A stretch of DNA of 64,000 bases from Cycas panzhihuaensis (lineage: Eukaryota; Plantae; Cycadophyta): the NCBI GenBank assembly GCA_023213395.1, contig CM041465.1, positions 37,579,741-37,643,740 on the forward strand. Direction: 5' to 3'. Of the stretch, positions 17,919 through 62,321 are shown piece after piece. The notes beneath the pieces are model-generated. The model ran no database searches. It was given only the letters and a program-made list of their open reading frames with translations, and was not told where the DNA came from. The position numbers and the translations under genes are program-made. Positions within the stretch are counted from its first letter, which is position 1; every line of letters begins with the position of its first letter.

Positions 17919-17937
17919 TAGGGTAGAAACCCTACCT
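17919..17937 (+). promoter_or_regulatory. Telobox-like motif TAGGGTAGAAACCCTACCT heading the antisense cassette of Copia C
   Basis: AAACCCTA at 17927-17934, downstream of a TA-rich tract (about 17770-17810); homologous to 62301-62321 in element K. Confidence 0.45.
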
Positions 17938-18414
17938 AGTTTTCATTCCCATGGCGGCGCTTCAATTTTCGTTGCAGGTCTAGACCCTACTTCTCGAACC
18001 TCCAACTCTATACTATGCTCAGACGCAAGAGTATAACGATGGTGGCTATGCTTGGACTACTCATAGTTTTGTACCGTGCTACATTCAAGTTGATGATCCT
18101 CTACAAGTCGAGCATTCATCGTTAACGTAGGCCTCCAAATCCCTCCTCTTTCGACCTCTGACATTACTGTTCACATTTTCACCAAGGCTATCTCCTCCCT
18201 CGGGGTTAGCTGGCAGCTAGCTATCCAAGTCTGGACGTTGTAACTTGTCTGGTTTGTGGCGGCTCTCCTCCAAATGTGTCTAGATCATGCAAGGTGTCTA
18301 ATGGCGACTCTCCTGCAAATGTGTGGTTTCTCCAATGATTGCTCTCAACGGCTCCTCTAAATGTGTCTCCCTCAGGTTTTCCTTGGTTGCAGGTCTAGAT
18401 TCTCCAATGGTTGT

Positions 18415-18946
18415 CTTTCTCAACCCTTAATCTCAGATGCATTCATAGGGATATCATGAACCGGCTTCTCTAGTTCCACCTTTTCATTTGGACTGACCTC
18501 AAATCTTGGTACCTTCTCTACAAGAGTACCCTTTGGTACCATAGCGATGTCATTTGGTGTTGCAGGAGCATCATTTGGCTCTTTATTTAGTTCTAGTTCC
18601 TTTAATAGCACATGATCCTTGTTTGGGGCAAAGCCAAGCAATGATGGGGCATCTCCATCCAGTACGAGCAATGGTGGTGCTTCTCTTATATATGGAGTTT
18701 TAGAGATTGACAACAGTACAGTTAGTGGAAGTGGGTTTCCAACTCTGCATGAAGTGCCATTGGAGACAGGTGAAGAGAGGGAAAAATTAGTGTCCATAGG
18801 TAATTATAGATTGATCCATAATGACAATTTATATCCAGATATAAAGATGACAAGTATGGTCAAAAGAGGTATTACTTTTGCCAGCGTGAACAGTGGTGGT
18901 GATGTTAAGGAAGGCCTTGCAATATTTGTATTGAAGTTTAAAGATA
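18415..18946 (+). pseudogene. NUP50: Captured fragment of nucleoporin NUP50 (FG-rich segment plus RanBP1-type domain with internal deletion), antisense inside Copia C
   Basis: One frame from 18421: QPLISDAFIGIS*TGFSSSTFSFG...SLFGAKPS...[17 protein letters not shown]|[32 protein letters not shown]...LKFKDS; matches recalled plant NUP50 motifs (NAFTGLASTGFS.SSFSFG, ETGEENEK, GNYRL.LNASLYP.MK...MDKKGITFACVNS, LKFKD). Confidence 0.88.
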
Positions 18947-21780
18947 GCTCTGATACCACGTAAGAATAGGCACATGTACATAGTCATAACATCATAGGAA
19001 TAAAAAAGATATAAGAGAAGAGATAATGCACATGCACACAGAGTTGACGGGTGGAAAACCCCTTCTGGGGAAGAAAAACCACCACTTAAAAGCTAAATTG
19101 TATTAAGAAGAAATGCTATACAATACCATGATTAAAACCACCTATGAAAGACAAAACCATCCTTGTAATAGGCTTCTAGATAGCCTCCTAGAATCCAGGG
19201 ATCAACTCCTTGAATCTAGGAGAAAATATAAATAATAAGAAAGGTTCGTTGAAATGTGCAGTTGTGCATTTCAACGACCTTCCACATAATATTAAACTTT
19301 AAAGTATAAACATTTAATTTTAGAATCACTTAAATTAGAAATTACACATGTGACTCAAATAATAACATAAAAGTAACATTAATACTTCTAACAAAACCAA
19401 ATGTACTTATCTAAGTTTTGCCAATGCTCCTATAAAGTCTTTGTAAGTAGTTGGCCTAAATCTTACTAGTGGTTGGGTATAAAAGTCATTCCAAGTAGGT
19501 GTTCCTATAGTTTATTCTAGCCATTGATACCATTGGATGGCCTCGTGTTCCAAGTGGAAGGAGACAAACATGACCTTTAGGTATCTAGTAGTTGATTTAT
19601 TTGGAAGTATTGTTTAGCCCTATAAATTCAACTAGTTGGATCCTTGCCATCAAACCTTGGGAAATCAATTTTAGTTGTATAGGATAAAATGCCTAGTGTT
19701 TGACTTGTAGTTTCCATGGCCCCTCTTTAGGAATTGGACTATTAGCTTTGGGCATTTGTCGATCCTTCATGTTATATCATTTATTTTGACTATATGAATG
19801 CTAATAGTTTGGTATCCATCCTCGTTAACATATTGTGTAGGTCATGAATGTCCTTGGTCATAGTATCAATCATGCCCATTTTTTCTCATTTTTTTGAAAT
19901 TTAATTTAATTTAATTTTTCTAAATTTAGTTTACCAAAGGGTGGAGAATGACAAATAAAAATGATTTTAGTAAGAGGCTTTGGTCAATCGAGCTATACAA
20001 ATAGGAGATATTAGATATTTCTTAGGCTACACAAATATGTGCAGGTTCTTATAAGGGAATTTGGTCGGTTATGCTAAAAATTTAACAAACTAATAAAAGA
20101 GGGTCTTGTATCCACAATGATAAGATCTTGCTATAGCCAAAATTTAGAGGTGATTTGAGTAATGATTGAGGAGTTATGGTGAATAGAAGGAAAATCACTA
20201 ATGTGAAAAAATTGACAAATCAATTTAGAATTTGGCTAAGGGCCCTTTAGAGAAAAGTGTTTAAAATGAAAATTTAGATAATTTGATAAAGTTTAGGGAA
20301 AAGAAAGCATCTAAAATAATAATATAGCTCCCAGAGTGATTTTTTTTTACACTTTTTCTATTGTTAAGTTTGATTCAGACTAGAAGTCAAAATCCCTCCT
20401 AGATATAGAGATTTGGTTTTGAAATTTCTATATACTAAAAACCCTTTGTTGTTGAATAGATCTACTCTAACATGCCCAAAATCTCTATTTTGTTTCATCT
20501 TGAAACCCTTTCTACCATGTATAATTGTCTCTACTCTATTCTATATGAATATATGTTCTATTATAATTCTATAGAAGCCAAAGTAGGATGGAGAAAAAGA
20601 GTTCCTAATCTTGGTATAAGGAGTGTCTGGTATATAGACCCTCTAATACACTAGTCCTAATCATAAATAGTATCAATTGTGAAGGCTAATGGTATACCCT
20701 ATAGCTATACTACCTTGTCTCTAGGGTATGTGGAGAGTAAGTTCCTAGGGCTAATCACTTACCAATACACTAAAGATGATAGATGTCAAAGGCTTCCTAT
20801 CTAATGTTGGTTCAGAAATACCTATAAGGGTTTTTCGATATATGTAAGGTACATGAAAGCTCAGCACTCTATCAAATGCAATTTAAAGTTTGAAACATAT
20901 TCCTTCATATGAAAGCACACTAGGCTAAGAATAATAGCTTATTGGGATTGTTATAGACCCCCAATATAGTGTCTTTAGCCTAGTAAAAAGGGTAGGTGCT
21001 AAGCATAATTATCTTCTCTTGAAAACTATAAAGTTGACATGAAGAAGGAGAAGGATGGAATCTCTATTTATAGCTTGTAGTAACTTGCCACTTTTACTAC
21101 TTTTTAATCACCAACATCCTAAGTATATGAGGTGAAATCTTATGGTAGGTAAAAGTGGCCCTAAAAAGTGCTCTGATACCACTTGGTATGATCCTGCCAC
21201 TACAAATCCTGAAAAGAAAATATGCATAGAAATCTCAAGAAACTTTATTAAATTACAAGAACTTAAAATCCTAGGTCTTTTCGAGGGGGAAACCTCTTGT
21301 CAATAGAGGTCTCTAATAGCATTCTTCAATACCCTCCTTATTACGAACATTCTTTATATATTAAGATGCTACTCTTGTTATCCTACAACTAGTGCATGTG
21401 GGATTACAAAACGAGCATTGCCCTTATAATGGAATATGTGTTATCATTATATTACTAATACTAACAACTACCATCCCATACTAATAAAGGGTTAGAACAT
21501 GAGGACCTTAACAATCTCAAAGCTAGTGGTTATTTCAGCTCATTTTGAAGTTGGATCTTTTAGTTTTATACTTTTTTCATATTTTTAAAATAGTATTTAT
21601 ACAATGGTTTAGACTCATATTGGAGTTGCTATAGTTTAGGCTCATTGTAGAGTAATATTAATTTAAGATTATTTTAGAGTAGTGTTGTATAAATGGAGAC
21701 TAGGCTAAAATCCTAATCTCATCAATGGGCTAAAGAGCCTTGAGGAGGAGAACCATATTTCTAAAGGTAGCATTCTATGA

Positions 21781-22551
21781 TATGTGCAACTAGTTGGTTG
21801 ACTTTGGTGTTTTATTTTTGTAGAATATGGTGGATTATAACTAATAAAAAGTGGGCTAATAAAGACTTAACTATGTTGTCAAGGGCAAGTAATTGAGGGA
21901 AAAGAATTTTATAAACTTATATAAGTTAGTAGACGACTAGCTAAGAACAAAAAAGTAATAAAATAGAGTTATTATAAACTTGGATTATATTAGTTAAGGC
22001 TTCAATGATTGGACTCTATTGAGTTATGTTATTGGTCACCATTGGTATGTACATTCTAGCATTTATCAAAATATGGTTTATTTAATCATGAATAATCCAA
22101 GAAATAATAGAAAGTTTAGTATATCTATGGCTTCCCCCATTAATATGGATGATTAATGCCATGAAAATGCATTAGTGGCATAGAGGTGACATGATGGATA
22201 TAGGAGAGGTACAAAAATTAAATAATAAGGAAAGGCTTCAAGTTTTTGATCTCAACTCTAACTACTAATTAGATTAGAAGTGGGCCCCATTAGTTGCTCT
22301 TGATTAATTTTACTACAAGTTTTTTGGGTTGTTTATTTTTATCCATCTAGTGTCAAATAGGTTTTAATAACAATTGAGGCCATGATGGACCTAAGTAACT
22401 GGATCTAAAGGTCTTGAATAACCCATATAATTAGACCTAAATTATGTGTTTTAGGTGGAGACAAAGCAACAACATGATTTACTTTAGATGCAAAGAAGGT
22501 AGAGTAAGCATAAAAAAGATTTTTTATTGTTATTGTTGTTTTACTTTTATG

Positions 22552-22583
<32 letters not shown>

Positions 22584-23390
22584 ATGTGTGCGTGTGTATG
22601 TGTGTAGTACTCTACTTTATGTGCAACTAGTTGGTTGACTTCAGTGCTCTATTTTTGTAGAACATGGTGGATTATAACTAATAAAAATTAGACTAATAGA
22701 GACTTAACTATGTTGGAAAGGGTAGGTAATTAGGGGAAATGGACTTGGTAAACTTGTGTAGGTTAGTAGACGGCTAGTTAAGAGTCAAAACGTAGTAAAA
22801 TAGGGTTATTACAAACTTGGAGTATATTAGTTAAGGTTTCAATGATTGCAGTTTATTCAGTTATGTTATTGGTCACTATATATACATTCTAGCACTTATC
22901 AAAATATGTCTACTTAGTCGCGAATAATCTAAGTGATAGCAGAAAGTCTAGTGTTTCCATGGATTTCCCTATTAATATGGATGATTAATTCCATAAGAAT
23001 GTATTAGTAGCTTAGAGGTAACTTGATGGATATAGAAGAGGTACAAAAATTAAATGATAAGGAAGGGATTTAGGTTTATGATCTCAACTTTGACTACTAA
23101 TTAGATTGGAAGTAGGCCCCATTAGTGGCTCTTGATTAATTTTACTACAATTTTTTTGGGTTATTTATTTTTATCCCTCTAGTGTTGAATAGATTTTAAT
23201 TATAATTAAGGGTATGATGGACCTAAGTAAGTAGATTTGAAGGTCTTGAATGATGCACACAATTAGACCCAAATTATATCTTGTAGGTGGAGACAAAGCC
23301 ATAATATGATTTACCTCATATGCTAAGAAGGTAGAGTAATCATGAAAAAGAATTGTTATTGTTATTGTTATTTTACTTTTATGACTTTTC
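21781..23390. repeat. Diverged tandem duplication, unit about 837 bp, each copy ending in a microsatellite
   Basis: TATGTGCAACTAGTTGGTTGAC starts at 21781 and 22618; colinear to TTTTACTTTTATGA; (TA)(TG)n at 22553-22604. Confidence 0.9.
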
Positions 23391-23394
23391 TTGT

Positions 23395-23552
23395 ATCTCT
23401 CTCTCTCTCTCTATATGTATATATACATATATACATACATATATATATATACATATATACATACATATACATACACACACACACACATACACACACACAC
23501 ACACACACATAGATAGATAGATAGAGAGAGAGAGAGATGTATATGTATATAT

Positions 23553-23640
<88 letters not shown>
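23395..23640. repeat. Compound microsatellite (CT)n/(TA)n/(CA)n/(GA)n
   Basis: Directly visible. Confidence 0.98.
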
Positions 23641-23642
<2 letters not shown>

Positions 23643-24207
23643 ATATGATTAAATTAAGAAGGGGTTTTAAATAGGGCCCCAACTATATTACATAATCCAC
23701 CAATCGACCATCAGAATTTGCCGTGACAAGCCCTTGGCCTAGCTGTCCTTTATCCTACCATCCTAATAATCTCTGCCACGACAAGCCCAATGGCTAGCTC
23801 TAAAACCCTAACTGGGAAAATGCTTCCCTATCCTCCTTAACCAAGTCTATAATCTCTTATGGTACTTCCTTATCCCAAGCCCCATCTCTTTTATGATATA
23901 CCCCCTAGTTGGCCAATTTGTCAGCTACCCTATTTCCTTCTCTGTAAGTGTGACATACCTAGAAATTTTCTTTACCTTTTATGATCTCTTGAATGTCTCT
24001 AATCATAGCTACAAATTTCCAATCTAGTTTTGACTCTCCTATGACCATCTTTATCATATTTAGTGAGCCCCCTCTAGTAGCACCCTTTGAAACCATATCC
24101 ACCGCTCTCTGCATAACAACTATCTCTACTCTATGGTTCGTTTGGCATCCGTAGTATATGACAAAGGCCCATACAATTTCCCCTTTGGAATTTCTATGAA
24201 TACTCTA

Positions 24208-24254
<47 letters not shown>

Positions 24255-24420
24255 ATTTAGCGAGTCCCCCTCTAGTATCATCCTTTGATAATCTCCCTTT
24301 AAAACCATATCCACCACCCTTTGCATAGTAGTCAACTTCGCTCTATGGTTTGTTTGGCATATATAGTAGTTGGCAAAGGCCCACATAATTTTCCCTTTAG
24401 AATTTCTGTAAATACTCTAT
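23641..24420 (-). mobile_element. 5'-truncated plant L1-type LINE: RNase H-like domain plus 3' tail, 5' part duplicated
   Basis: Minus-strand translation gives ILEGDSLN, HTYREGNRVADKLAN, TNHRA/VE; segments about 24062-24207 and 24258-24420 are duplicates separated by (CA)n. Confidence 0.8.
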
Positions 24421-45393: not shown

Positions 45394-45396
<3 letters not shown>

Positions 45397-46666: not shown

Positions 46667-46815
46667 TGCATCACTCTGAGGCCAGTGGATTCCATTAACT
46701 ATCTTCATGTTGATCATCGTAAAATAGAATTCGTCGGAGTTCCTTTTCCTCTTTCTTGTAGAAATCTTGAGCTTGAAGCACATAGTTCTTGTGTTTTTTC
46801 TAATAACCCTAGCCT
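46667..46815 (-). pseudogene. UTP11: Captured fragment of U3 snoRNA-associated protein 11, antisense inside Copia I
   Basis: Minus strand reads RLGLLEK(+1 nt)HKNYVLQAQDFYKKEE|RNSDEFYFTMINMKIVNGIHWPQSDA; recalled UTP11 signature is FGLLEKHKDYV.RA..YHKKEE..(about 10 aa)..RNPDEFYFKMIN.KTVDG.H. Confidence 0.85.
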
Positions 46816-47732
46816 ATTCCTTGTAGCCGGTAAGGCATGTTTCGTTTAATTGATTTGTTTTTCTTAAGTGTCATTTGTTTAGTTACGGTCTTCCATCTTT
46901 GCTTCCTTTGCATCCTGAAGAACTCTTTTAAGCTTTGTTGTGCATTGCACTTGTGTCTATATAGCTCATAACAGACAGGTTAAAAGGAATCGTGTCCATA
47001 AGTTGAACATTTAAGAGCTGCATTCTTTCTTGAATTTGCATCCTAGACCCACAGTTTAGAAGGTAGACCATCACTTCTCTGCCTCTAGTATGCCAAAGGT
47101 TTGCCTCTCGCCTTGTGTATAGAGAGAACATTTGTCTTTGATAATTCTTCAGTGGACTCACCTCTGTATATCTTTCCAAATTTACTCTCACCATTCCTCA
47201 TACCCTTGGGATTTACATAGAGGAAGGGCCCTCTCACTGTTCCTCATACCCATGGCATTTACATAGAGGAAGGGCGCGACAGGATCACTAGCAAATCGTC
47301 ATTCTAATAGAAACACAAACAAATCTCGCAAATAGCTTGACTTGGCATATACAATATCATACTAACAGTAATGGATATCACTCCAAAGTTATCTACGTCA
47401 AACCTTGAAACTAAGCAACAATGGCTGGGAAAACCCTGCAAGATTTGCTTAAGCACAATGAATCGGACGTGACAAAAGGAAACCTGAAAACAACTGGTAC
47501 GTTAATCAATCGAGGGCAACCACAGAAGTCCTCTCTAGAAAATACTTCCAAGTTACCATTGTATCTGCATAACAGCCAGACCGTCATTCCAATAGAATAC
47601 AAGCTCGCTTGTTTTTCGATACGCGTTCTGTGTATATTCATTGGCGTTCCATTTTTTCGCTGTGCGGCCTGGCCTATTTTTTTGTATTTTATTTTTTTAA
47701 ATATTATATATATATATATGTATATATATATA

Positions 47733-47765
<33 letters not shown>

Positions 47766-49961
47766 TACTTCAGGCGCTGTTTGACCCATTTTAATAAATA
47801 AAATCTAGAATTTGTACCGATGAATTCGTCTGGCTACGTCTTACTAATTAGCACCTATTTTCTTTTATTTTATTCTATTTCATTTTATTTTTCTAGCATA
47901 TAAATATATGTATTTATGCGCTTTGATAAAAGCAACTTGGTTGGCTCATCGTAAATTAGTTTCATTTTTTTTCGATCAAGTTTTTTAATTTGTTTTTCAG
48001 CTGTTTGTCGCAGCTGGGCGATTTTGCCTTGTATCAATTTATTTTTATGTTTATAAAGTTTATAAAAAATTAAAGAAAATTGTATATTTTTTGAAATCTG
48101 ACCACTTAAAGGATATAGCCCCCTTTTGATAGTAGCCTGTGGTCATAAGATCATTTCTATGTGACTGTTAGCCATTGAAAATAGGCTAACAAAAAACATA
48201 AAACCTTTTTTCTTTTTCTTTTTTTATTTTTAATTTTTACATAAGGTTATTGGCATTTTTTTTTACCATAACTCTTCATTGGCTCATCAGTTTTAGACGA
48301 AACCAATTTCATTAGATCAAAAGTTTTCTGTAGATCAATTTTGACTGGTCATATGACCAATTTGTGCTGATTTAACCTCATTTTAGTGGATTTAAAGTCA
48401 ATCAGTCATTTTTTCAGCCTTTTTTAAACTTTTTATAAAATCATTTTTTGAATTGATTGTATTTTATTACCAAGAAACTATTTTCTACTTGGATTTATTC
48501 TAAATTGATCTGTTCTCAACAAACTTCATTACCCACCTTTTATTTTATTTTTTAGAATTCATTTTGACCACTATTTTAATCGCCGAAAGTGCCATTTTAG
48601 TGGTTTTTAGCATTTTTCTTAATATTTTACCATAAAGGTACCTATTACTATTTTCACTATAACTTTCCTGTTTGACATCCAAATTTTGTTCTGTCAGTTT
48701 TGTTGGGAATCTGACTCAATTCTCTTCAATTTGATATAATTTTTTATACATTTTAATGTGTTTTTACTGAATTTCAAATCAATCAAAGTTGAGGTACTTA
48801 ATTACCTCAAAACTATTATTTTTGCACATTTTTTATACATATTTCTCAAAAATTTTCAACTAAAAGTATATTGAGTAGTCTTTTAAATAATATTTAATCA
48901 TTTTTTAGCATTTTATAAAGTTTTATTAGCAATTTTGAGCTCCCTGCTCCTGTTAGGCCTCAAAAGGAGGTCTGTACCTTTGAATGGTTTAAATCTTGAC
49001 TTATTGGAACCTGTTTTTAAAATGGTTAGTTCCATTGGATTCAGATTTTATTAATCTACATATTGGTACAATTTCAAGTTATTTTGACATGGTTTAGTAT
49101 AGTTTTCAAGTTGTCAAACTTAAGCATATAAGTACATCTTAATAGGCTTGCCCTCCAAACTTTTTAAAGAAAATTTTATTTTATTTCTCATTGGTTGTTC
49201 ATAATATATATTCAAGGTTTCTACTTGACCTTCATATAAGCATTTTTAAGATGTTTAGTAACATAAATTGTTCATAAAACAACTAAAAGTATACATACAT
49301 ATATTTCATTTTTCAGTTGTATATATCTTCCTCAAGGCAAAGTTTTTTTTATACTAAAAAAAAAAGTCATTTTTTCTTTTCATTGAAGATTTATGTTTAC
49401 TCATTTGAGAAATTAAAGGTTGAGAACTCTTTATATTTCATTATCAAAAGTTTATTTCAGCTTTGTATAAGTGAAAAGGATCTTTGTTATATCCATCTTT
49501 TAAAGTTTACTCTAAATGCATAATTATTGAAAGTTTTCTTATTTATTATTATATTTCAAAAGTTTATTTGAAATTTTATCTCATAAGTGTGTCATTTATT
49601 TGAAAAACATACATTTATTAAACGTTTTTTATTTTTTTTTCATTATTATTGAAAAATATCATTTTTTTCTTGCACTTATAAAAATTACATTTAATTTATT
49701 CTATTTTCAAAGGCATATTTCATCCATTTGAAGAGTATTATATTGTTTTTGAAAAAAAATAAGATTTTATTTCTTTCAAAAGTTTATTATTTATTTTATC
49801 TTACTTAGAGCATAATATTTTAGTTTTTAGTTTTTCTTTATTATATCAAAGGAACCTTTTTTTTTCTAAGCAAGACCACATTACTAATTAGTTTAATTTT
49901 CACATTAAACAAGATAATTCTAAATTGAACCACCCTATTTTTCTAACCTTGCAAGGGGAAC

Positions 49962-50362
49962 GGTTAGGACCCTTGAAGTTACCACCCCACACATGCTAAT
50001 CAGCCTACTCATATTAGATGAGGACAGCCATTAGTTATTAGGTGTATTTAGTAGCAGGCTGAGGTGTAGAACCTATTCATTTCATGGCATTTGGAGACCA
50101 AAGCTATATCTGGAGAAGGTGAGTGCCTTAGTTTGAGAACCTTCACCGCTAGATCTGTCGCTAGGCATAAGTCTGATATAGGTGGACTGACAATTCAGGG
50201 GGGGTGTGAAAGCCTTCTTAGCAGCCCACGTACTGAGGTATATAGAGCCTAGTGCTCACGTACCAGTATATTGGGTCCTTATTTTACCATTTGTGGGCAG
50301 GTGCCACTAGACAGAATAGCAACCGAAGGTTGCCCCAGGAGAAACTTAAACTTAGAGCCTAG
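49962..50362 (+). other. Conserved non-coding leader block upstream of gag (also 39394-39768, 45900-45930 plus 55137-55500, and partly 34695-34930 on minus)
   Basis: Shared motifs GGTTAGGACCC.TGAAGTTACCAC.CC, GGTGAGT.CCTTAGTT, TAGATCT, TAGGTGGA, TACTGAGGTATATA, AAACTTAGA amid unalignable AT-rich flanks. Confidence 0.8.
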
Positions 50363-50529
50363 TAGCCTATATAGGTCCTAGTTTACTTATTCAAAACCTT
50401 GGGAAAACTTTGGAATATATTTAGAAATAAATTTTACATTTACACTTTTTTAATATTTTTAAATACTTTTTTTAATATTCACATTTAACCTTTTGATATT
50501 TCATTTTATCAATACAACTTCAATTCAAA

Positions 50530-53500
50530 ATGATATCTTGTTTTGGGAACATAATTATTGTAAAATTTGATGGAAATAATTTCCTTAACTGGAGTAGGAG
50601 GATGAGGCCCATCCTTATAGCAAACGATATGTGGGATATAGTGAGAACCGATTACAATGAATTAGGACCAAATCCAACTAATGCTGAAAAAGTTACATAC
50701 AAAGAAAATGTCAAAAAGGATAATAAAGCATTAGCCCTTATCTTTTGTACATTAGAAAATCATTTAGTTCCACGAGTCAGTGAATCTATTAAGTCCAAAG
50801 AGGCTTGGGACACTTTACAACTTATATATGAAGGAGCGGCCTCCTCTAAATTACAAAACTTGAGAAGTAAATTCAAAAATTTACGTATGATGTCTCACGA
50901 ATCAGTAATTGAATTCATGAGCAAAGTCCAAGATATCGTTAACCAAATGAGGTCACTTGGGGATACCCTAACCGAACAAAGGGTGGTTGAAAGAATCCTT
51001 AGATGTGTAGGAGCTGTAAGACATTTTGAAATGGTAGCTACTAGTATTAGCATATCAAAAGATCTAAGTACCCTCAAAGTAGAACAACTTAGTGTTATAC
51101 TCATGTCTATTGAAGAGCAACAAAATGCAAATGAAACTTTAGAACATGCCTTTGTTATAAATGCCCACATTTAATCTAACTCTCAAGCAGGAACCTCAAA
51201 ACAAAAAGAATCTCCTCTAAGGGGAAAAGATGGAAATCCTAGAAATGAAACTAGAAAAGATCCTCCATGATATCAAGCCCCTCATTAAAATAGACGAGGA
51301 GGATCCCAACAACATGAAAACCCTCCAAGAAATCCTAACACTCTAAGAAATCCCAACAAAAAAAGATAAGTTGAGAATCATCCTTGTTGTCCACATTATC
51401 ATGGGAATTCACAACCTTCAAGATTAACTTAGAACTATCATGATAACCAACCAAGAAACAATCCTCCTCAATTATATGAGAAAAGGGGGAGATCTTTCAA
51501 TATTGATCGTTCTCAACCAAGGAGTCAAAGCCTCAGTTATAAAAGAAGAGATCAATTATATTATACTTATTGTCATGAAAATGGTCACACTGAAGATAAA
51601 TATTTTTTAAAATAAGGACCACCCCTTAGAGGACATGCTTCAAATTCATCAGAATAAAAAATTAATAATAAGTTATTTCCATCTAGTTTTTCTGCTAAGG
51701 AAGAAGATGATGATAGCTAGTATATTGATTCAGGTTGCTCAACTCACAGGACCCATACAGAACATTTATTTCAAAATTTGGATAAAAATAGAAAATGGTC
51801 AATTATATTTAGAGACAATACTTCTCACGAATCAATTGGGAAAGGTAACATTGCCTTGCTGACTAATATTGGTGAATATAGATACTTGAATGATGTCCTA
51901 TACGTCTATGCTTTAAGGAAAAACTTGATATCGGTAGGATAGATGATGGGATAAGATTATAAGGTGGTTTTTTACAATAGCAAATGTGTCATCAAAGACA
52001 AAAGAAAAAATAAAGCTATTGTTGCTAGAGGTATAATGGCTAAAGATCATTTATTTAAGCTTACCCTCACCTCTTCAGATACCTATGCCCTTAGAACCTC
52101 AACTACTATGGATAGTGATTTATGGCATCAACATTTTGGTCATCTTAACTACAACAGTTTAGCTCTTATAAAAATATTAGATATGGTTAATGGTTTAACA
52201 CCTATTGATGTTAATAAAAATTTGTATGAGGGATGTCTTCTAGGCAAATAACATAGAGAAAGCTTTCCAGATTTTAACCATCGAGCGTCTGCCCCCTTTC
52301 AACTAGTATACACAGATATTTATAGACTAATGACTACTCCTTCCTTGGAAGGTGCCAAGTATTTTCTCACATTTATTGATGACTTTACAAGAAAGACATG
52401 GGTATTCTTTCTAAAATATAAATCCGATGCTTTCAACCACTTTATTGACTTCAAAACCTTCATTGAGTGACAAAGTGGATATCATATCCTTTCTCTAAAA
52501 TCAGATAATGGGGGAGCATTTACCTCTAATGCTTTCAAGGATTATTGTATCCGTCATGGGATTAGGATACAACTTACCAACCCCTACACCCCACAATAAA
52601 ATGGTGTAGCGAAAAGAAAAAATAGAACTATCATAGAAATGGCATGATGTATGCTTAAAGATAAAAACTTAGGCCATGAATTTTGGGCTGAAGCAGTTCA
52701 TACAGCCATCTACTTACTTAATAGATGTTCCATCAAAGCACTTAGGTGGAAAACTCCAGAAGAAGCATGGACTAGTTATAAACTAAGTATATATCATCTT
52801 AGGGTATTTGGATATTTAGCCTATGCCCATATTCTTGACCAAAGAAGAACTAAATTGGATGACCATAGTGTCAAAAGTATCTTTATTGGATATAGTGAAT
52901 CATCAAAATCCTATAAAGTTTATGATCTGAAATTAAGAAAAGTTATAGTAAGTAGGGACATCAAATTTTAAGAAGACAACTACTACCAAAATAATCAAGA
53001 ACAATAGAAGGACATTGGCATTAAATTTGACACATTAAAAAAATCCAAATATGTGTCTCTTATGTAGAGAAATATTCAGGAACCCACTAGGGAATAAACA
53101 TCATCTCAACCTCTATCACAACATCTACCCAAATGGGTTCAATGCAACCATGACTTAGGAAATATATTAGATAACACTAGAAGATCTACACACTCACAAA
53201 GGGTCAACTTTGCCCTAATGAGCAATCTACTCAAAATTCATGAGCCTCAAACCTTTGATGAGGCTAAACAACATGAATGTTGGTAGAAGGCCATGAAAGA
53301 GAAATATAAGTTCATCATTAAGAATGATACTTAGGAACTTGTAGATTTACCACCAAAGAAGAAAGCTATTGGCACCAAATGGGTCTATAAGACCAAGTTA
53401 TACTATGATGGCTCCATTGATAAATATAAAGCTCGTTTAGTTACTAAAGGATATGCCTAAAGAGAAGGCATAAATTATACAGAAACATTTTCCCTAGTCG

Positions 53501-54770
53501 TTAGGATGGAATCTGTTCATATGATAATAAGTTTAGCCACCCAAATGAGTTAGAAAGTTTATTAAATAGATGTAAAAAGTGCTTTCTTAAATGGTTATGT
53601 CAAAGAAGATATCTATGTCACTCAACCCCTCAGTTTTGAAGTCATGGGGGAAGAAGACAAAGTGTACAAGTTAAAGAAGGCACTATATGGTCTAAAACAA
53701 GCACCCAGGGCTTGGTATTCCCATATAGACAAGTATCTTAAAGATCAAGGGTTTGGAAAATCTCAAGCAGATCCAAATCTATACACCCAAATTAAGGGAA
53801 ATTTGATATTGATTATAGGACCCTATGTAGACTATTTAATTTATACTATAAATGACTCCCATCTTTTACATCAATTTAAAGATGCTATGTGTAAGGAATT
53901 TGAGATGACAGACTTAGGCCTTATGCATTACTTCTTAGGATTGAAAGTTTGGCAGGATAAACAAGGAATATTTATTTCTCAACGTAAATATATATTAGAT
54001 CTTCTATAAAGATTCAAAATAATAAATTGAAAACCATTGACAATACTAGCAGAAATTGAAATCAAACTTTCTAAGATAGATGACTCGACTTCGGTTGATC
54101 CCACTCTTTATAGACAACTCATTGGTAGCCTCATATATTTAACTTCTACTTAACTTGATATAACATATTCAGTCAGTGTTGTGTCTAGATTCATATAGGA
54201 TCCAAAGACATCTCATTAGCAAGCTGCTAAAAGAATCCTTAGATACCTTAAAGGGACTCTAGATTTTGGGTTATACTATAAAGCTATATCCAAATTGTAG
54301 TTAACTGGTTACACAGATTCATATTAGGCCGGCGATATCGATGATAGAAAATCTACCACAGGTTATGTCTTTAGTATGGGATCAGCAGCAGTAACTTGGA
54401 GTACAAAGAAACAAAACACCATTTCCTTATCCACGATCGAAGCAAAGTATAAATCCACAGTTTCAGGAGCTTGTGAATCAATTTGGTTAAGAAGACTTTT
54501 ATAGGATTTTCAGATTAAACAACAAGGTCCTACTAGAATTTGGTGTGATAATCAAAGCACTATTCAAATGGCCAAAAATTTAGTATTCCATTACAGAACA
54601 AAACATATTGAAACTCAACACCACTTCATTCAGTAACTTGTATAAGCAGACGAGATAGAGTTGACTTATTGCAGTACAGAAAATTAAACAGCAGATATTT
54701 TTATGAAGGCTTTGGGAAAAATTAAATTTGAGAAATTCAGAGACAATTTGGGAGTCGTACACGTTGGACT
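50530..54770 (+). pseudogene. gag-pol: Copia I gag-pol with many stops
   Basis: FDGNNFLNWSRRM gag ORF 50530-51174; IDSGCSTH; LWHQHFGHLN; FWAEAVHTAIYLLNR; KLKKALYGLKQAPRAW; EFEMTDLG; ADIFMKAL. Confidence 0.93.
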
Positions 54771-55577
54771 TATGGGGGAGAATATTGGGAATAATCCCAA
54801 TGTGGTTAAATCACCTAAGTGCTTAGGGACCCTCAAAGCCACCTTTGAGGGCCCTTAAGGAACCTTGAGCCACTCAATAGCCGCCTGGACCTAACACCAC
54901 TTTTTTGACGTACGTATTTTATTTATTATTGTTAATTTTTTTAATATATTTTGAATTTACATTGGTTAATGTGCAGCTAGGGTGATGGCACTCGATGCCT
55001 CCCCGAAATTCATTATTTAAGGGATGGGAATACCTTCCAGGTGTTTTTTAATACCACCATCTAAAGGAAATCACCATTATACTCAAAATGCTGTCTCTTT
55101 GAAGTCCTGCTCTACTCCTCCAACTCCATCAACACACCCTTGGCCTACTCATATTAGATGAAGAATATCATTGGCTATTAAGTATAATAAGTGGTAGGCT
55201 AAGGTGGAGTAAACCTATATTTTTGGAGCTTGGAGATCAGGCTAGACCCAGGCGGGTGAGTGCCTTAGTTTAAAAAGTCATCACCATTAGATCTATCACT
55301 AGGTATAAATTTAGCGTAGGTGGATCAACAAGTTAGGGGAGTCTTATAACTTCTTAGGAGCCTATGTACAAAGGTATATATAGCTTAGTACTCACATACC
55401 GATATATTAGGTCCCTAATTTGCCACTTATGGGCAAGCATCACTAGACAGAATAATAACTAAAGACTTCCTTAGAGACCCATAAACTTAGAGCCTAGTAA
55501 TCTTTTAGGTAGTAGGACACACTATTTTTAAAACTATACCTTGGGAAACACTTGAATAGGCTTTATTTTGAAACACA

Positions 55578-57949
55578 ATGGTTACAAATTTTGGTAACAT
55601 GATCATTTCCAAGCTTCATAGATTACATTTTTTGAATTAGAGTAGGAGGATGAGACCCATCCTTATAGCTAAAGATATGTAGGATATTATGAAGATAAGG
55701 TATACAAAACTTGGTCAGAATGATACTAAAATAGAAAAGCAAGCATTTAAGAAATGCATAAAAATAGACAATGAAATTTTGGCATTAATTTTTTATACCT
55801 TAGAGGACCATATCTTTCTAAAGAGTTAATGAGGCATCAAAGTTTAAAGAAGTATGGGACAAATTATAGTTTATCTATGAAGGAGTAGCCTCATCAAAAC
55901 TCCAAACATTAAGGAGTAGATTTAAAAATTTAAGGATATTTCCCAATAAATCCATCAATGAATTTATAACAAAAGTATAATATCTTGTAAATCAAATTAG
56001 ATCCCTTATAGAAACCCTTACCAAATAAAGGGTTGTAGAAAGGATACTCAGGTGTGTTGGTGAAGTTAAAAGGTTTAAGATGGTAGCCACAAGTATAGAA
56101 GTCTCTAAGGATCTAAGCACATTGAAGATTGAATAATTGAGTGCCACGTTAATGGTTGTTGAAGAAAAGAAAATCATAAATGAATCCTTAGAATATGCCT
56201 TTATAACAAAGGCTAGGATCAAATCTAATGCACAAGTAAAAAGATCAAGGACAAGGAACCAATACCCAAGGGGAGGAGATAGGAATCCTAGATAAGAGAC
56301 ATACTAAGAGCATTAACCTAGATACCAAGCTCTCATTAAAGGAATCAAGGAGCTAATCAAAGATATCCAAGTCAATAAAGATATCAAAGTCAAGAAAGGC
56401 ATCAAGAAGCAAGCTAATGTTATCAAAATTGCCAAGGTCATAACAATTTTCAAAGGCCCAATTTCGATTATCCAAGAAATAGACAAAGAGATAATTAAAT
56501 CCTATACTTAGAAAGAGGTAGGACACTCTCTATAGATAAAGGACACCTTAGAAGTAAGAGTCTAAGTCAAAGAAGAAGGGATCCAATCCATTGTACATAT
56601 TTCCACAAAGTTGTCCATAATGAAGATAGATGCTTTATTAAAAATGACCCTCCAACAAGAGGTAGTGTTAATACATTCATTGAAAATAAAAAGAATGATC
56701 ATCTATTTTTATCAAGCTTTGTTGCCCATGAAGAAGAAGATTGTTGGTATATAGACTTTAGTTACTCCACACATATGACTTATAAAGAAGAGATATTTCA
56801 AACTATTGATAAGTCTAGGAAGGGCACGATCATGTTTGATGATGATACATCATATGAATCTAGTGGAAGAGGTAAAGTTATCATCACAACCAATTTAAGA
56901 GAAAATAAATATCTTGATGACCACATTCCATCACTTAAGAAAAATCTTCTATCTATGGGATAGATGATGGAATAGGACTATAAGGTTATATTTGAAAATG
57001 GTGAATGTACTATCAAGGACAAAAGAAAGAACGAGGTTATTATTACTAAAGGAAAGATGATTAGCGATAGACTCTTCAAGTTAATCATAATCCTTTCATA
57101 TAACTATGCATTGAAAATAATAATTAAGATAAATAGTGACATGTGGTATAAAAGGTTTGACCACCTAAACTGTGGAAGCTTAGCCCTTATGAAAAGAATG
57201 TATATGGTTGAAGGACCATCATAAATTGAAGCTAACAAATACATTTATGAGGGGTGCCTCTTAGGCAAGTAACATAGAGAAAATTTTCCTAATAGAAGTT
57301 ATAAAGTAAAGAGGCCACTTTAATTAATCTACACAGATCTTTATGGTCTAATAGAAGTCCCATCTCTAACTAGTACAAAGCATTTCCTCACCTTCATTGA
57401 TGATTATACAAGAAAAATATGGATCTATTTTCTAAAATTCAAGTCATATGTATTTCAATGTTTTGTAGACTTCAAAGCCTTTGTGGAGAAGCAAAGTGGA
57501 CATACGATACTTTCCCTAAGATAAGATAATGGAGGAGAGTTTATTTCTAATGAATTTAATACCTAGTGTACATACCATGGCATTAGGAGGCAATACACAA
57601 ACCCCTATACTTCACAATAAAGTGGGGTTATTGAATTCAAAAATTACACTATAGTTGAAATGGATAGGTACATGCTTAAAGACAAGAAATTAGGACACAG
57701 ATTTTGGGTAAAAGTTGTCCATACTATAGTTTACCTCCTAAATAGGTATACCACTAAGGCCCTTAGGTGGATGATACCAAAAGAAGTGTGGATAGGTTAC
57801 AAGCCTAGCATTCATCACTTGAGAATCTTTGGATGCCTAGCCTTTTCCCACATTTTAGAATAAAAAAAGAGCAAACTTGATGATAAGATCACTAAGTGTA
57901 TATTTATTGGGTATGGTGATGTGTCAAAGCCATATAAGGTGTATGACCC
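55578..57949 (+). pseudogene. gag-pol: Copia H gag-protease-integrase remnant, paralogous to I
   Basis: Colinear with 50530-52930; WYIDFSYSTHM, FIDDYTRK, DNGGEF, FWVKVVHTIVYLLNR. Confidence 0.88.
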
Positions 57950-60806
57950 TATTAATGTGGTAGTTAATTACTAATCTACTTAGTTAATATTAATGTGGTT
58001 TAATTAAGTGAAAGGGTGCGAGGCCAAAAGGTATGACTTATTCAGAGGGTTACAACCCTAATCGAATGACACCTCTTAGGAGAATATAAATGCCTTGAGG
58101 CCTTGTGTATTCATCATCTAAGATCATTATATCAATCCATTGTGCAATAATCTAAGAGATCCATCAAGGATCCTTTTGTGGTGGGTTTTTTCCTGAAAGG
58201 GTTTTCCCATGTAAATTCTATGTACTGTATATCTATTTTCTCTATGTATATTTGTTTGCTTACTGTGTATGGTAAAAGATTCTATATTTGGGAACATTTG
58301 TATATGTTTTCATGTTCCTGAGCATGGTATCAGAGCTATAGGTTCCTACACAACCGAAGTCAGATGTTGACCAGAGTAGTGTGATTGTTGGTTGCTAGGT
58401 AATGCCATCTAACCCAAGACAAGTTTTAAGGGTCTACCAACCCCAACAACATGCAGAAGTAGTCACAATATATTAGTGGTGGTTAAAGCAGTGAAGATCA
58501 TTATTCGACAAAGAAGTGTAAGGGTTATTGGAGTCAAATTTAGACGTGAAGACCATGATTGTGGTTGGAGTTAGCTCGTTGGGGGCCATCCAAAGCTGGT
58601 TGAAGATCTATTATAGAGATTGATGCTTGCAGAGCATGTACTGATGGTGATTTGGCAACTTTAAGGATAGCTAAGAGTATGTACATGTAAGTTCATTATA
58701 TTCCTCATCAAAATACCATAAAAATTGATAAAAAGGGTATTGTTTTTGGTATTACTTGCTATCAGACCTTTATGTAAGCACTAGTGGAGGTGATTGAAGC
58801 CCGTATTGGTAGTTTTCTATCTAAATATAAGTGTTGGGTTGAAGTTTACAGTAGTAGAAGGCAATTTTTATTGAATTTTCTTCATATTTATGAGGATTTT
58901 GGAGACTAGTGTGCATATATTGAGCTTAGAATAGCCATATTAAGGTTGGCCAGGTACTTATTAACATACTTGGGTGAGTTTGAGTAGTTGTTGGGTTGTG
59001 TTTGTGATGTTCTGGCTCTCTTAAGTGTTGGTTTGGTGGGATTCAAGTTGGTTGGGCACTATTTAAGGTGATTGGGTGCTAATTATGTTGGTTGGGTATA
59101 TAAAAATTGTGGCTAGGTGTCTATCTTCATTGGTTGGGCTATCCAGTGTATGGTTGGGTTGTGTATGGGTCTCTAACCATTTGTACTAAGTCAATTAAAG
59201 GTTTGGTTTCTACATGCAGTCTGTGTATACTTAATGACAACTGCACCTTCATATTTCTCCACGTGAAGAGCAGGAGATATCATAAGGTGTGTGTTAGATA
59301 TATTTGACCTTAGTAACCTTAAGAATTATTTTACCACATGTTTTTAATGAGATTTAAGCATGTGTAATAAGTTTCTAAGGGGACGTGATACCAAAATATC
59401 ACACTTTTTAGGAATATGCCTTTTGGCATATTCCTCTTATAATTGAACTTTATAAAACAACCCTTTACCATTGATATTACATGTGATATTGTATAGTGAA
59501 GATATTTGGAGTGTTTTTGGTCCGTTTTGAGCATGGATCGAGGGGATATTTTATGTTTTTGACTTGGTGACCATACACTATAGATGTGTGGAGCCATCTT
59601 TTATTTTGGAGCATATGTTTTTCAGCCTTTGTTAGTGTTGGTGATGCTATTTAATGGCTATTTAAGGTCATTTGCTGATGGTTGAGAAGATATAAGTGGT
59701 CAATAGTTCACTTAATATGGGTATAGTTAGTGTTGGGTGCCTTTGGAAGTGTGCTTGGGAGGCAGAGGAGGACACAAGGGTACAATTTTTTCCTACATAC
59801 ATTCATTTTGGTGTTGTTTAACCCATATTCAATCTCGTTTTTTGAGATGGAGTGCATTATGCCTAAAGTAATCTTTAATGGTAACAATTTCAGCGAGTGG
59901 AAGGCCAATATGGAACTTATTCTAATGGTGAATCACCAAGGCAAAAGTATACTCAACTCCATTAGACCATAAGGAGCGTATTCATCTCAAAGAGAAGCAA
60001 TTTATAGTTGTGGGACTATTAAAACTGTCACTGTCACTGGACTAGAGAGCGTTGGTTCACAATTTTGACGAACTGGCAGAGATATAGAAAAAACTATGTG
60101 ATACATTTAAAAAGAAGCAGATGAATAAACATTTGGCACTGATGTTGGAATTACTTAACTTGCATGTGGAGGATGAGAATAATATCAACTCCTACCTTAA
60201 CAAGATTATCGACTTGAAGAATAAGCTAGAGAAACTAAAGCTGAACTTGATTGATGATGCATTGTTATTCGTAATAATAATGTTGAAATTGTCGACTGCC
60301 TTCACCACATTCTAGACTATTTATAGTAAAAGATTCTATAGTTGGGAACATTTGTGTATGATTTCATACTCCCAAATATGGTATTAGAGTAGAGACATTT
60401 AATGGGCTTAAAAACCTAATTCTAGTAGAGGATGCCAAGCTCAAGCATCACAATATACTTGGAGGTTCTAGTTTAAGTTAGGACCTAACCATGAAAACTC
60501 AGAGGAAAAAGGCCTCTAAGGAGGAGAAGATCACATGGAGGTTAGGAGAAAGTTATCAAGACAAAAAGAAGTTCAATGGGAAATGAAATTACTGTAAGAA
60601 GGATGGTCACCACAAGAAGAACTATTGGTTCAAGCATCATGACAAGCGCAAAGTCAACCAAGATGACAAAAGGAAGAACATTGTTGCTCATTGAATCTAA
60701 GCAAAATCCTTATCAACCAAATTCAATCAGAGAGATTATTGGGTGCTTGAATCTAGTATGCAGAAGTATATTTCTTACTAGAGGCAAAACTTTGATATAA
60801 TGACTT
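57950..60806 (+). mobile_element. Copia J (distinct family) inserted in H; interrupted in the protease by K
   Basis: LTR about 57950-58324; PBS TGGTATCAGAGC 58325-58336; gag from 59847 (IFNGNNFSEWKANMELIL); knuckle YCKKDGHHKKN; DYWVLES protease remnant. Confidence 0.75.
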
Positions 60807-61512
60807 TGTTAGGAATGTTAATGTTACCTTTTTATGTCACATGTCAAAAATATAAACTTGAGTTACTAAGGTCAGTTTGATATAATTTATGTTTAATTAT
60901 TGTTTATTTTGTAAGTTCATTGAAATGAGCAATTACCCATTTTAGCGAACCTCTTACTCCTTTAAAAGCTCCTCCTAGAATCTAGGACGTTGTCTGGTTG
61001 TCAAAAGTTTGTCTTAAGGATGGTCTGAAGGTATTGTCTGGTATGGAGGTATGTCAGTCTGGTCAGGTTTTTGTCTTATGTGTATATATTCTCAGCCAAT
61101 AGATCAACTTTCAGAGGTGGTTTTTCTTCCCCAAAAGGGGTTTTCCACCTACAATAATGTGTATCTGTGCAATGTCTATTTGTGAATTGTTTGTGCTTTA
61201 CATTTGATTAAGATGTTACATATGATACCTTTTTCGTTACATAGTATCAGAGCCTTCCATTGCCTCTTCTAGTTTACATCCAAGATGTAAGTGGATTGTA
61301 GAGCACTATAACCATCAATGTCTTAAACATCAACAGTCTTGGCTTGACTTTGTTTCTGATAGATATCATTAATATAAATCATGTAGGAACCTCCCATTTC
61401 TAACCATAGCTCACTGGCAATAGCATACAAAGAAGATCACTATTATTGACAGATAACAAAATGACGTCCCAAGTTCAAATTATAGAATGTAATTCAAATC
61501 CTTTGGTGTAAG

Positions 61513-61911
61513 TTACATCGTATCTATCGTGTAACCTTTGCAAATAATCTCTATGCATCGAGAAACAGGCTGTCCTGCAGCTTGCCATCCATTAAAGCCT
61601 CTCTCAAGAATAAGAATTTTCTGAATATTTGATGTTCCAATAGAATTATTTTCTGACAAATTTTCTACAAGCATGCAAGCACAGGATGGTTCGGGAACCT
61701 TGCTCAAGGCATACTGAAAGACAAAGGTATCTTTGCCCTTCATATTTTGAAGAAGCTTTGGGATTTGATCCTCAAACGTATCACTAACATAGTGAAAGGA
61801 ACCTGCTATGTGCCCATCATAGCTCCTCTCTTCATCCCTTACATCAATAATAATCACGCTAGGAGATTGTTGAAGGTTGAGGAGTTCTGCAGCTATAATA
61901 TAACATACTTC
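61513..61911 (-). pseudogene. CDC25: Intronless, catalytically dead copy of plant CDC25-like/arsenate reductase (rhodanese fold), antisense inside Copia K
   Basis: EVCYIIAAELLNLQQSPSVIIIDVRDEERSYDGHIAGS...KDTFVFQYALSKVPEPSCA...ILERGFNGW...CKG; the HC(X5)R motif HCALSQVRG reads QYALSKVPE; no in-frame ATG at the expected start, TGA at 61912-61914. Confidence 0.92.
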
Positions 61912-62300
61912 TCAGGTTTAAACCCAGGTATTCAAACTGCAAGATGCAAATGAACGAAAGAAGAAACACGATCTAAAACTCAAAGACTCCAATGAAGGAG
62001 AACCGCTGGCAAAACCTTAGGAGATGAAATAAAAAAGCAATTGTTGGAAGATAGATAACAAAGTGTCGCTACTGGACTGGTCTGCTTTAAAGACAATGCC
62101 CTAAATATCAAGAGAATGCAAAAAGAGCGTCTCGCCTATGTCGTTACTACCTCGAATACAAAGACAAACAAAGACGAAGAGCTAGTCATCGCCTCGAATG
62201 CAAAGATGAACAAAGACACAGAGCTACTGCCATAGCCGTCTCGACCTGAAGATTGATCCAACACCATCGCTGCCGCCTCGACCTGAATACACAAATAAAC

Positions 62301-62321
62301 AGGTAGGGTTTCCTAACCCTA
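62301..62321 (-). promoter_or_regulatory. Telobox-like motif TAGGGTTAGGAAACCCTACCT heading the antisense cassette of Copia K
   Basis: Homologous in sequence and position to 17919-17937 in C. Confidence 0.45.

Follow-up and report, generated by a model that had tools for sequence, protein, structure and literature searches.

Antisense host-gene fragments in the 5′ leaders of three decayed Ty1/copia elements of Cycas panzhihuaensis

Introduction

LTR retrotransposons are known to capture genes, and the way in which host RNA enters these elements has mostly been guessed. The usual picture is template switching during minus-strand synthesis, which yields sense inserts. LTR elements take up spliced mRNAs (PMC5664825, PMC5131818, PMC3726574). 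In LTR gene transduction or retroduplication (maize Bs1; rice, sorghum and pepper; LTR-mediated retroposition in animals), as at the locus described here, pieces of cellular mRNA lie between LTRs without poly(A) and with microhomology joints, and have multiplied with the element (PMC7264820, PMC3726574, PMC5664825, PMC5131818). The captured piece is usually in the sense of gag-pol (PMC7264820). Those four studies contain no analysis of capture position relative to the primer binding site (PBS), or of orientation.

For gymnosperms, a Platycladus TE-capture study puts the number of captured coding fragments at about 400,000 per genome, with some TEs carrying several (PMC13477047); it concerns the same host group and the same general phenomenon as our locus, and discusses epigenetic conflict with donor genes. 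Two further systems are related in part. The aORFs of Grande (gene23), RIRE2 and Retand also run against the direction of gag-pol within an LTR element, and some have a promoter of their own. In aberrant plus-strand strong-stop events, where the primer tRNA is copied beyond the PBS, something other than the minus strand serves as template for extending a 3′ end, as in the mechanism proposed below.

Here we describe 64,000 nt of Cycas panzhihuaensis (GCA_023213395.1, CM041465.1:37,579,741-37,643,740, forward strand; hereafter the window), in which three decayed Ty1/copia elements, C, I and K, each carry, in the PBS-to-gag leader, a host-gene fragment in antisense orientation: NUP50 in C, CDC25/ACR2 in K and a short piece of UTP11 in I.

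Results

Detectable host domains are confined to three leaders

The elements have copia organization. A tRNA-iMet PBS adjoins the 5′ LTR and a purine tract precedes the 3′ LTR; copia gag and RVT_2 are present with integrase upstream of RT (Pfam Retrotran_gag_2, rve, SH3_retrovirus and RVT_2; order by tblastn). An LTR pair with target duplication was found in C and I, and K shows the 5′ LTR only. In each element the host fragment lies within a GC-richer leader block of ~1.0–1.4 kb, the edge of which in the GC profile falls +1.0–1.1 kb from the PBS in C and K and +1.4 kb in I.

A first-pass annotation, made from the letters of the window, had proposed antisense host fragments between PBS and gag in all three elements, and homology searches bore this out (E 7e-34 for NUP50, 4e-42 for CDC25, 3e-6 for UTP11). 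Captures in both orientations, which it had named as contrary evidence, did not appear at the scope of the window: among 181 ORF pieces from the leaders, non-TE Pfam matches came from antisense pieces only, and 281 ORF pieces from the remainder matched TE families only. By this Pfam survey, detectable host domains within the 64 kb are found in the three leaders and in no other place. All three fragments are antisense, a sample (n = 3, p = 0.125) that is not significant by itself.

Inspection of the flanks in C, I and K revealed neither poly(A) beside a host fragment, as the annotation had claimed, nor a target-site duplication around one, so that the signs of later insertion that would have spoken against it were not seen. 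A LINE-mediated processed pseudogene does not fit, since the host-sense 3′ ends meet the PBS in C and probably in K, and in I they run into AT-rich sequence that holds no run of A. The same lack of poly(A) and target duplications counts against a broader and, in our view, unlikely alternative, namely acquisition at the DNA level, with cDNA or genomic filler joined by end-joining or microhomology repair, or LINE-inserted processed pseudogenes, and with selection keeping those leader inserts whose orientation adds no AUG, splice or polyadenylation signals. All TE classes often capture in gymnosperms (PMC13477047), as this alternative would have it; however, the detectable host domains of the 64 kb are confined to three leaders, and both place and orientation would be left to selection alone.

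Element C carries a NUP50 fragment that probably overlaps the PBS

The features of C are as follows.

18959–19393, minus strand: 5′ LTR, 434–435 nt, TG..CA-type ends
18947–18958, minus strand: PBS, TGGTATCAGAGC, adjoining the LTR, a 12/12 match for the 3′ end of tRNA-iMet
18436–18951, plus strand: NUP50 fragment, FG region and C-terminal RanBD, antisense to C (tblastn E 7e-34)
17938–18435, unstranded: part of the variable block (the "head" of the first-pass annotation), 45–50% GC
17917–17937, unstranded: telobox-like palindromic motif that bounds the block distally, TTAGGGT-AGAA-ACCCTA then CCT, at the GC drop
12429–16667, minus strand: decayed gag-pol (Pfam rve, SH3_retrovirus, RVT_2; tblastn; frames)
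~15834–16667, minus strand: gag
14268–15179, minus strand: integrase
12889–13983, minus strand: RT
12581–12910, minus strand: RNase H
12429–12437, minus strand: PPT
11995–12428, minus strand: 3′ LTR, flanking 5-nt duplication GGTTT/AGTTT (4/5 match)

The LTRs (18959–19393 and 11995–12428) are 92.6% identical. By tblastn (E 7e-34) the NUP50 fragment aligns to residues 242–440 of P0036 (472 aa; Pfam domains NUP50 and Ran_BP1), and phmmer gave 78 matches, the best at 4e-27. The fragment holds one stop, no frameshift and a 40-codon in-frame gap within the RanBD. The head contains three loose 42–45-nt repeats at 18257–18370, and 17938–18435 gave no Pfam match.

The NUP50 frame enters the PBS complement (18947–18958) by 5 nt, where GCTCT reads Ser-Ser, and the closest NUP50 homologues read KF[KR]DSS at this position; the chance of such a Ser-Ser match is roughly a few percent, which is not negligible. 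The fragment thus likely adjoins the PBS with a 5-nt overlap. Judged from sequence, this junction would fit strong-stop priming via microhomology at the exact end of the 12-nt PBS copy. Microhomology of this kind is equally typical of end-joining, as acquisition at the DNA level would require, but random breaks would not be expected to give an exact abutment to the last PBS base.

Element K carries an amplified CDC25/ACR2 fragment

Element K extends past the end of the window.

60807–61241, plus strand: 5′ LTR, 435 nt
61242–61253, plus strand: PBS, TAGTATCAGAGC, 1 mismatch
61254–61530, minus strand: stretch from the CDC25 stop codon to the PBS, either 3′UTR-like or another fragment, lacking poly(A)
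61531–61911, minus strand: CDC25/ACR2 (rhodanese) retrocopy-like fragment, antisense to K
61912–62300, unstranded: head of the variable block, with loose 42-nt repeats at 62150–62301
62301–62322, unstranded: telobox-like palindromic motif that bounds the block distally
63160–63999 (start ~63160), plus strand: decayed gag, 62.5% aa identity to C gag

The CDC25 fragment matches Arabidopsis CDC25 (PDB 1T3K, E 4e-42, residues 27–149) and Pfam Rhodanese (6e-10), and is 73–79% identical to gymnosperm proteins. Its 127 codons are open and collinear without a gap, and they read on where the Ginkgo model Gb_07788 ends. The active-site loop HCxxxxxR is altered, with HC changed to QY and R to P. No Pfam match was found in 61254–61530, which diverged skim contigs also span; the block probably starts at the PBS.

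In contigs from four skim-sequencing runs of three related organisms, the payload is covered by several diverged sequences at 88–96% identity. The occurrence of diverged CDC25-block contigs in three related organisms indicates that the block is multicopy, and contigs across the boundary between CDC25 and the head (61743–62039 and 61837–62003) point to an amplified block, since the donor gene would not bridge it. Hence the K payload multiplied along with its element, and the possibility of single-copy payloads never amplified, raised earlier as a reason for doubt, does not apply to K. Summed skim-contig depth, which is not a copy number, was 4–64 over 61401–62400 versus ~1500–3400 in the LTR and 2000–23000 in gag; the leader of the neighbouring element J has no comparably long, deep trough (minimum 146–315 at 59001–59400). 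By contig depth, the payload-bearing variant is a small minority of the K family.

Element I carries UTP11 at a distance from the PBS

The third element is flanked by a perfect target duplication.

45931–46279, plus strand: 5′ LTR, with target duplication ACACA at 45926–45930 and 55132–55136
46282–46293, plus strand: PBS, TGGTATTAGAGC, then ~50–85 nt common to the sister element H
46367–47675, unstranded: variable GC-richer block with UTP11 as its sole identified content; a (TA)n tract (47690–47766) lies at its end
~46676–46830, minus strand: UTP11 N-terminal fragment, ~residues 25–85, antisense to I, one frameshift and stops
50497–54681, plus strand: gag-pol (gag, PR, INT, RT, RH; Pfam Retrotran_gag_2, RVT_2; tblastn)
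54782–55131, plus strand: 3′ LTR, preceded by a purine tract

The LTRs (45931–46279 and 54782–55131) are 89% identical. UTP11 was recognized by Pfam PF03998 (27.7 bits against a cut-off of 25 bits, E 3e-6), and two collinear pieces have PDB matches to UTP11 exclusively; the piece at 46676–46830 corresponds to residues 56–81 of human UTP11 and the adjacent one to 27–44 of yeast Utp11.

In I, 50–85 nt separate the PBS from the start of the block, and ~380 nt separate it from UTP11. Since the block starts away from the PBS, strong-stop mis-priming fails for I and one must suppose a plus-strand switch at a later point; this start also fits acquisition at the DNA level. The proposed junction at the PBS therefore stands for C, is plausible for K and is lost for I, where sequence shared by H and I follows the PBS. 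For the same reason a dedicated slot with a PBS-fixed proximal junction in all members was rejected, and the claim of a fixed-position slot found no support, as the block in the I/H lineage does not begin at the PBS.

Variable blocks and a shared telobox motif in C and K

C and K had been taken for one family. Their gags are 74% identical in nucleotides and 62.5% in protein, and their LTRs are alike in two short patches only; on these sequences C and K are best regarded as related but separate families. Nor could a homologous leader be upheld, as nothing is alignable past a ~22-nt palindromic telobox, and outside this motif the two align no better than shuffled sequence. The shared motif itself was confirmed: across the window the 11-mer AAACCCTACCT has just two exact occurrences, equivalently placed at 1010 nt from the PBS in C and 1048 nt from it in K, and the palindromic telobox (~20–22 nt) has the same orientation and an equivalent distance from the PBS in both. 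It is absent from I. Of the suggested variable slot with conserved flanks, the first part holds, as the block differs between related elements with conserved LTR and gag, but the distal flank amounts to the 22-nt motif, which I lacks.

Teloboxes are promoter elements in plants. The motif could accordingly belong to a purpose-built, reloadable antisense cassette, in which a promoter-like telobox module transcribes the PBS-proximal payload, and antisense or double-stranded RNA silences host genes or shields the element. We consider this improbable. It would account for the same 20/22-nt palindrome at the distal block edge, 1010 and 1048 nt from the two PBSs, and agrees with the promoter role of teloboxes, with the CDC25 frame of K that is open over 127 codons, and with the epigenetic conflict over captured fragments described in maize (10.1101/777037). 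However, the payloads are decaying (CDC25 has lost its active site, and NUP50 and UTP11 contain stops), the heads of C and K are not conserved, I lacks the telobox, the payload-bearing K variant is a small family minority by contig depth, and Platycladus TEs gained no methylation advantage from capture (PMC13477047). The data imply neither a purpose-built slot nor a function. A conserved antisense aORF was also rejected: the block lies 5′ of gag, differs among C, K and I, and has clear host homologues.

The heads bear on exon trapping, in which antisense read-out initiated in the leader leaves via the 5′ LTR and splices onto neighbouring host exons, the chimera then templating the plus strand and re-entering by its 5′ homology. 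Both of these coding fragments do lack the 5′ end of their gene (NUP50 starts at ~residue 240, CDC25 at ~residue 27), and both heads contain CAGGTC-like repeat units that resemble exon junctions. Yet C and K show no homology between their heads, and hence have no 5′ exon in common, and the scheme needs more steps than the evidence supports; we regard it as very improbable.

Discussion

On balance we lean, with modest confidence, towards the reading that the fragments are passenger pieces of host mRNA, built into the 5′ leader by Ty1/copia reverse transcription, co-amplified with the elements and now decaying. An antisense insert from a spliced sense mRNA needs copying onto the plus strand, so capture most likely took place in plus-strand synthesis; the observed orientation is what the first-pass annotation expected from such copying. 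The initiator tRNA bears an Ar(p)/Gr(p) modification at position 64 (PMC7694415). RT would halt at this bulky ribosyl group, 12 nt from the tRNA 3′ end, and the plus-strand strong-stop DNA of C would thus finish with 12 nt copied from the primer tRNA. The terminal 5 nt of this DNA (AGAGC) probably paired with GCUCU of a co-packaged NUP50 mRNA and were extended, after which RT would have returned to minus-strand DNA farther along the leader; repeated template switches could produce mosaic blocks. Inserts may be tolerated in the leader because it is non-coding. The evidence for the mechanism in the window is thin: strong-stop priming on host mRNA, as first suggested, agrees with C, where the junction fits the end of the 12-nt PBS copy, but this is one informative junction and I does not fit.

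More speculatively, some gymnosperm copia lineages might habitually mis-prime strong-stop DNA on co-packaged mRNAs, and thereby maintain a renewable, mostly antisense leader archive, bounded distally by a conserved palindromic telobox. Given that element RNA carries antisense host stretches, such an archive could contribute to cross-talk with essential host genes through small RNAs. This extension is possible but doubtful. As a set, antisense inserts from the last PBS base would point to the second strand transfer. If true, part of the captured-exon load of gymnosperms would be explained, and the question arises whether element transcripts with antisense host sequence affect donor genes. The value of the locus lies in a question that can be tested genome-wide rather than in a settled result.

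In the literature searched, we found no published description of strong-stop extension on a cellular mRNA; the template proposed for C differs in this respect from that of the aberrant strong-stop events. The Platycladus study differs in approach, using exon BLASTN against all TEs, and orientation, PBS proximity, junction structure and the word "antisense" are absent from the portion of its text that was searched (PMC13477047). The Grande gene23, RIRE2 and Retand aORFs occupy the interval from pol to the 3′ LTR, are conserved among copies and have no host homologue (PMC7264820), whereas the block of C, I and K lies 5′ of gag, varies between copies and is plainly host-derived. Compared with LTR gene transduction, the fragments in C, I and K are all antisense and sit in the leader behind or near the PBS. 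Capture by LTR elements being known, what is new here is an unusual variant of it, host fragments that are antisense and leader-sited.

Host gene fragments in copia leaders

Over its 64 kb, the window is AT-rich (32.5% GC) and consists of nested LTR retrotransposons, without any intact gene. Three of these, the Ty1/copia elements C, K and I, carry fragments of the host genes NUP50, CDC25/ACR2 and UTP11, respectively. As the first-pass annotation had claimed, all three payloads lie in the leader, between the tRNA-iMet primer binding site (PBS) and gag, all three are antisense to their own element, and no run of A follows the host-sense 3′ end of any of them.

Features of the three elements and their payloads
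18959-19393 and 11995-12428, minus strand: LTRs of C, 92.6% identical
18947-18958, minus strand: PBS of C, 12 nt, perfect to tRNA-iMet
C, other copia features: PPT; gag-INT-RT-RH in copia order
18436-18951, plus strand: NUP50 fragment, residues 242-440 of a 472-aa protein, E 7e-34, one frame
60807-61241, plus strand: 435-nt LTR of K (PBS 61242-61253; gag from about 63160; K extends past the window end)
61531-61911, minus strand: CDC25/ACR2 fragment, ungapped to residues 27-149 of Arabidopsis CDC25 (1T3K), E 4e-42
45931-55131, plus strand: element I, LTRs 89% identical, perfect target duplication ACACA
46282-46293, plus strand: PBS of I (gag at 50497)
about 46676-46830, antisense to I: UTP11 fragment, short, two adjoining pieces in different frames

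The reference protein for the NUP50 fragment bears the Pfam domains NUP50 and Ran_BP1. A single stop interrupts the fragment, which also has a clean gap of 40 codons within the RanBD; it gave no Pfam or PDB match and was recognised by a full HMMER search. The CDC25/ACR2 frame is open with an altered catalytic loop, and its closest matches (a Ginkgo model, 79%; JGI transcripts, 73%; Cryptomeria, 70%) are from gymnosperms, as is the host. The UTP11 pieces match positions ~27-44 and ~56-81 of UTP11, and one of them exceeds the Pfam cut-off (27.7 bits versus 25). Chance similarity is ruled out by the E-values, LINE-type retrocopies by the absence of poly(A), and conserved aORFs by their different place and by the host homologues of the fragments. 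For an 89-aa antisense ORF in I, a protein atlas returned only low-recognition noise.

Placement and orientation

We extracted all stop-to-stop ORF pieces of 30 aa or longer from the opening part of nine leaders and compared both orientations with Pfam. Rhodanese and Utp11 were found among the 84 antisense pieces, and the 97 sense pieces gave no Pfam match. The ORF pieces from the leaders of the other elements (F, G, H, J, D and A) contained no Pfam host domains. Elsewhere in the window, 281 pieces of 45 aa or longer matched retrotransposon families only. The absence of host domains elsewhere is weak evidence because Pfam is insensitive to decayed pieces. Together with the HMMER result for NUP50, all three host-derived stretches found in the 64 kb are thus in copia leaders and antisense. 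Their placement in leaders is clearly non-random; orientation by itself, at three of three, falls short of significance.

No tRNA genes and no captured small RNAs were detectable in the window, where Rfam searches with gathering and E-value thresholds yielded microsatellite artefacts only. Spurious matches to miRNA families came from long GA/TG/TA microsatellites (23371-23653) downstream of a tandem duplication of ~837 bp (21781-23384, 84.6% identical). Two adjoining, mutually similar ORFs of ~80-96 aa at 23962-24416 on the minus strand (repeat 24083-24253/24295-24463, 78%) resemble, by eye, RNase H-like domains.

Copia C sits nested inside the older element D. Copia I was inserted within the leader of its sister element H, which is thereby split (43419-43880/43882-45931 plus 55137-57947). 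The first 173 nt of the H LTR region (43419-43591) match the LTR of G (84%), and toward the LTR end, near 43700-43880, the alignment is with the LTR of I. Two readings would account for 43419-43880: a recombinant LTR, or a G 3′ LTR that is truncated and adjoins H. F (34016-36814, minus strand) and G (37495-41071, plus strand) are related copia elements, ~70% identical and homologous immediately after the PBS, which stand head to head with their 5′ LTRs separated by 680 nt. Furthermore, a 3.6-kb non-autonomous Ty3-type LTR element at 684-4306, with 234-nt LTRs that are 100% identical, a perfect 5-nt target duplication (CTAAC) and a tRNA-iMet PBS, encodes only gag (Retrotrans_gag/Ty3_capsid) and an aspartic-protease-like ORF; it is a very recent insertion which needs mobilisation in trans.

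Amplification of the K payload

Parts of the window were recovered from sequencing runs of several related organisms, and no RNA run contained it. Logan contigs from four low-coverage DNA runs of three organisms were mapped to 58001-64000 at 88% identity or more. Contig depths are not copy numbers and are used qualitatively here: summed depth was in the thousands at the K LTR and gag versus 4-64 across the payload and the head, the part of the variable block beyond the host fragment and away from the PBS. Over the leader of the neighbouring copia element J, depth remained largely in the thousands and fell briefly once, to 146-315 at 59001-59400; a trough of the length or depth seen in K is absent there. 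Each K payload site is covered by several distinct contigs that are 4-11% diverged from the window, and some of the contigs (61743-62039, 61837-62003) span the boundary between CDC25 and the head. The chimeric arrangement is therefore present in several copies in related genomes, which bears out the expected amplification of the payload with its element. Judged qualitatively from contig depth, it is confined to a small part of the family.

The variable block and its flanks

Starting at the PBS, each leader contains a GC-richer block (32-50% GC) of ~1.0-1.1 kb in C and K and ~1.4 kb in I, beyond which GC content falls to 17-31% and the sequence includes (TA)n or other tracts of low complexity. 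The host fragments occupy just part of this block; the remainder is exon-like in composition. TRF detected no tandem arrays in the heads. Loose 42-45-nt tandem repeats, for which short seeds were needed, occur in the part of the block outside the host fragments, at 18257-18370 (C), 62150-62301 (K) and 47195-47275 (I), and their units differ among the three elements. At 4.2 kb, the leader of I is unusually long, which is accounted for by ~2 kb of AT-rich sequence (47767-49760) without a counterpart in H; this sequence could represent additional decayed cargo or a nested insert.

C and K, taken for one family in the first-pass annotation, turned out to be related only: their gag genes are 74% identical in nucleotides and 62.5% in protein, and their LTRs are alike in two patches. 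One 41-nt patch (61109-61149/19050-19090, 93% identical) was found in a very large number of contigs from each of the four skim runs. On either side of the patch these contigs diverge, and it is therefore a short LTR core, conserved across many copia families. The heads of C and K, likewise supposed to be homologous, are unalignable (local score 18 versus a shuffle mean of 19.7 once a short motif is removed). Of the proposed distal flank, C and K share this motif, which is identical at 20 of 22 nt:

17917-17937 (C) and 62301-62322 (K): palindromic telobox-like motif, TTAGGGT..ACCCTA, 6-7-bp stem, 4-nt loop

In both elements it points the same way and lies at the distal edge where the GC-rich block stops, the distance to the PBS being 1010 nt in C and 1048 nt in K; I lacks it. 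The palindrome is a possible RT pause or re-entry site or a candidate promoter element, the promoter role being speculation.

Junctions and mechanism of capture

Anchoring of the payload at the PBS applies to C and possibly to K, and fails for I. In C, NUP50 homology extends to 18951, 5 nt inside the PBS complement, whose overlapping bases read Ser-Ser in the NUP50 frame; the best NUP50 homologues have KF[KR]DSS at this site and most others [AS]S. The simplest reading is a 5-nt overlap (GCTCT) of donor mRNA and PBS. In K, 277 nt that look like a 3′UTR separate the CDC25 stop codon from the PBS. In I, H shares the ~50-85 nt following the PBS, which places the start of the variable block farther on, with a distance of ~380 nt between PBS and UTP11.

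Under the usual capture model, in which templates are switched on the minus strand, inserts are in sense orientation. A spliced sense mRNA can yield an antisense insert only via copying onto the plus strand of the element, whose natural free 3′ end is strong-stop DNA terminating in a copy of the primer tRNA. Position 64 of the initiator tRNA, which lies 12 nt from the end of the molecule, bears a bulky ribosyl modification (PMC7694415), and we infer that an RT stop there would produce the 12-nt PBS. Priming of the strong-stop 3′ end on NUP50 mRNA is consistent with the C junction, which falls exactly after 12 nt and has the 5-nt overlap. The strong-stop priming put forward in the first-pass annotation thus suits C, but I would require a later plus-strand switch. 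DNA-level end-joining followed by selection is a possible alternative. Strong-stop priming on host mRNA is, on the evidence of the one junction in C, probably the best single mechanism, a view we hold with rather modest confidence. The payloads are decayed, and nothing in this analysis shows a function for them.

Comparison with known systems

It is well established that LTR elements capture spliced host mRNAs (PMC3726574, PMC5664825, PMC5131818), and capture of host fragments is massive in gymnosperms (PMC13477047). In the literature, mostly outside subscription journals, we found no account of PBS-proximal, antisense-biased capture and no description of strong-stop DNA priming on mRNA. Genes transduced by LTR elements are usually in sense orientation (PMC7264820), whereas the fragments in C, K and I are antisense in all three cases.
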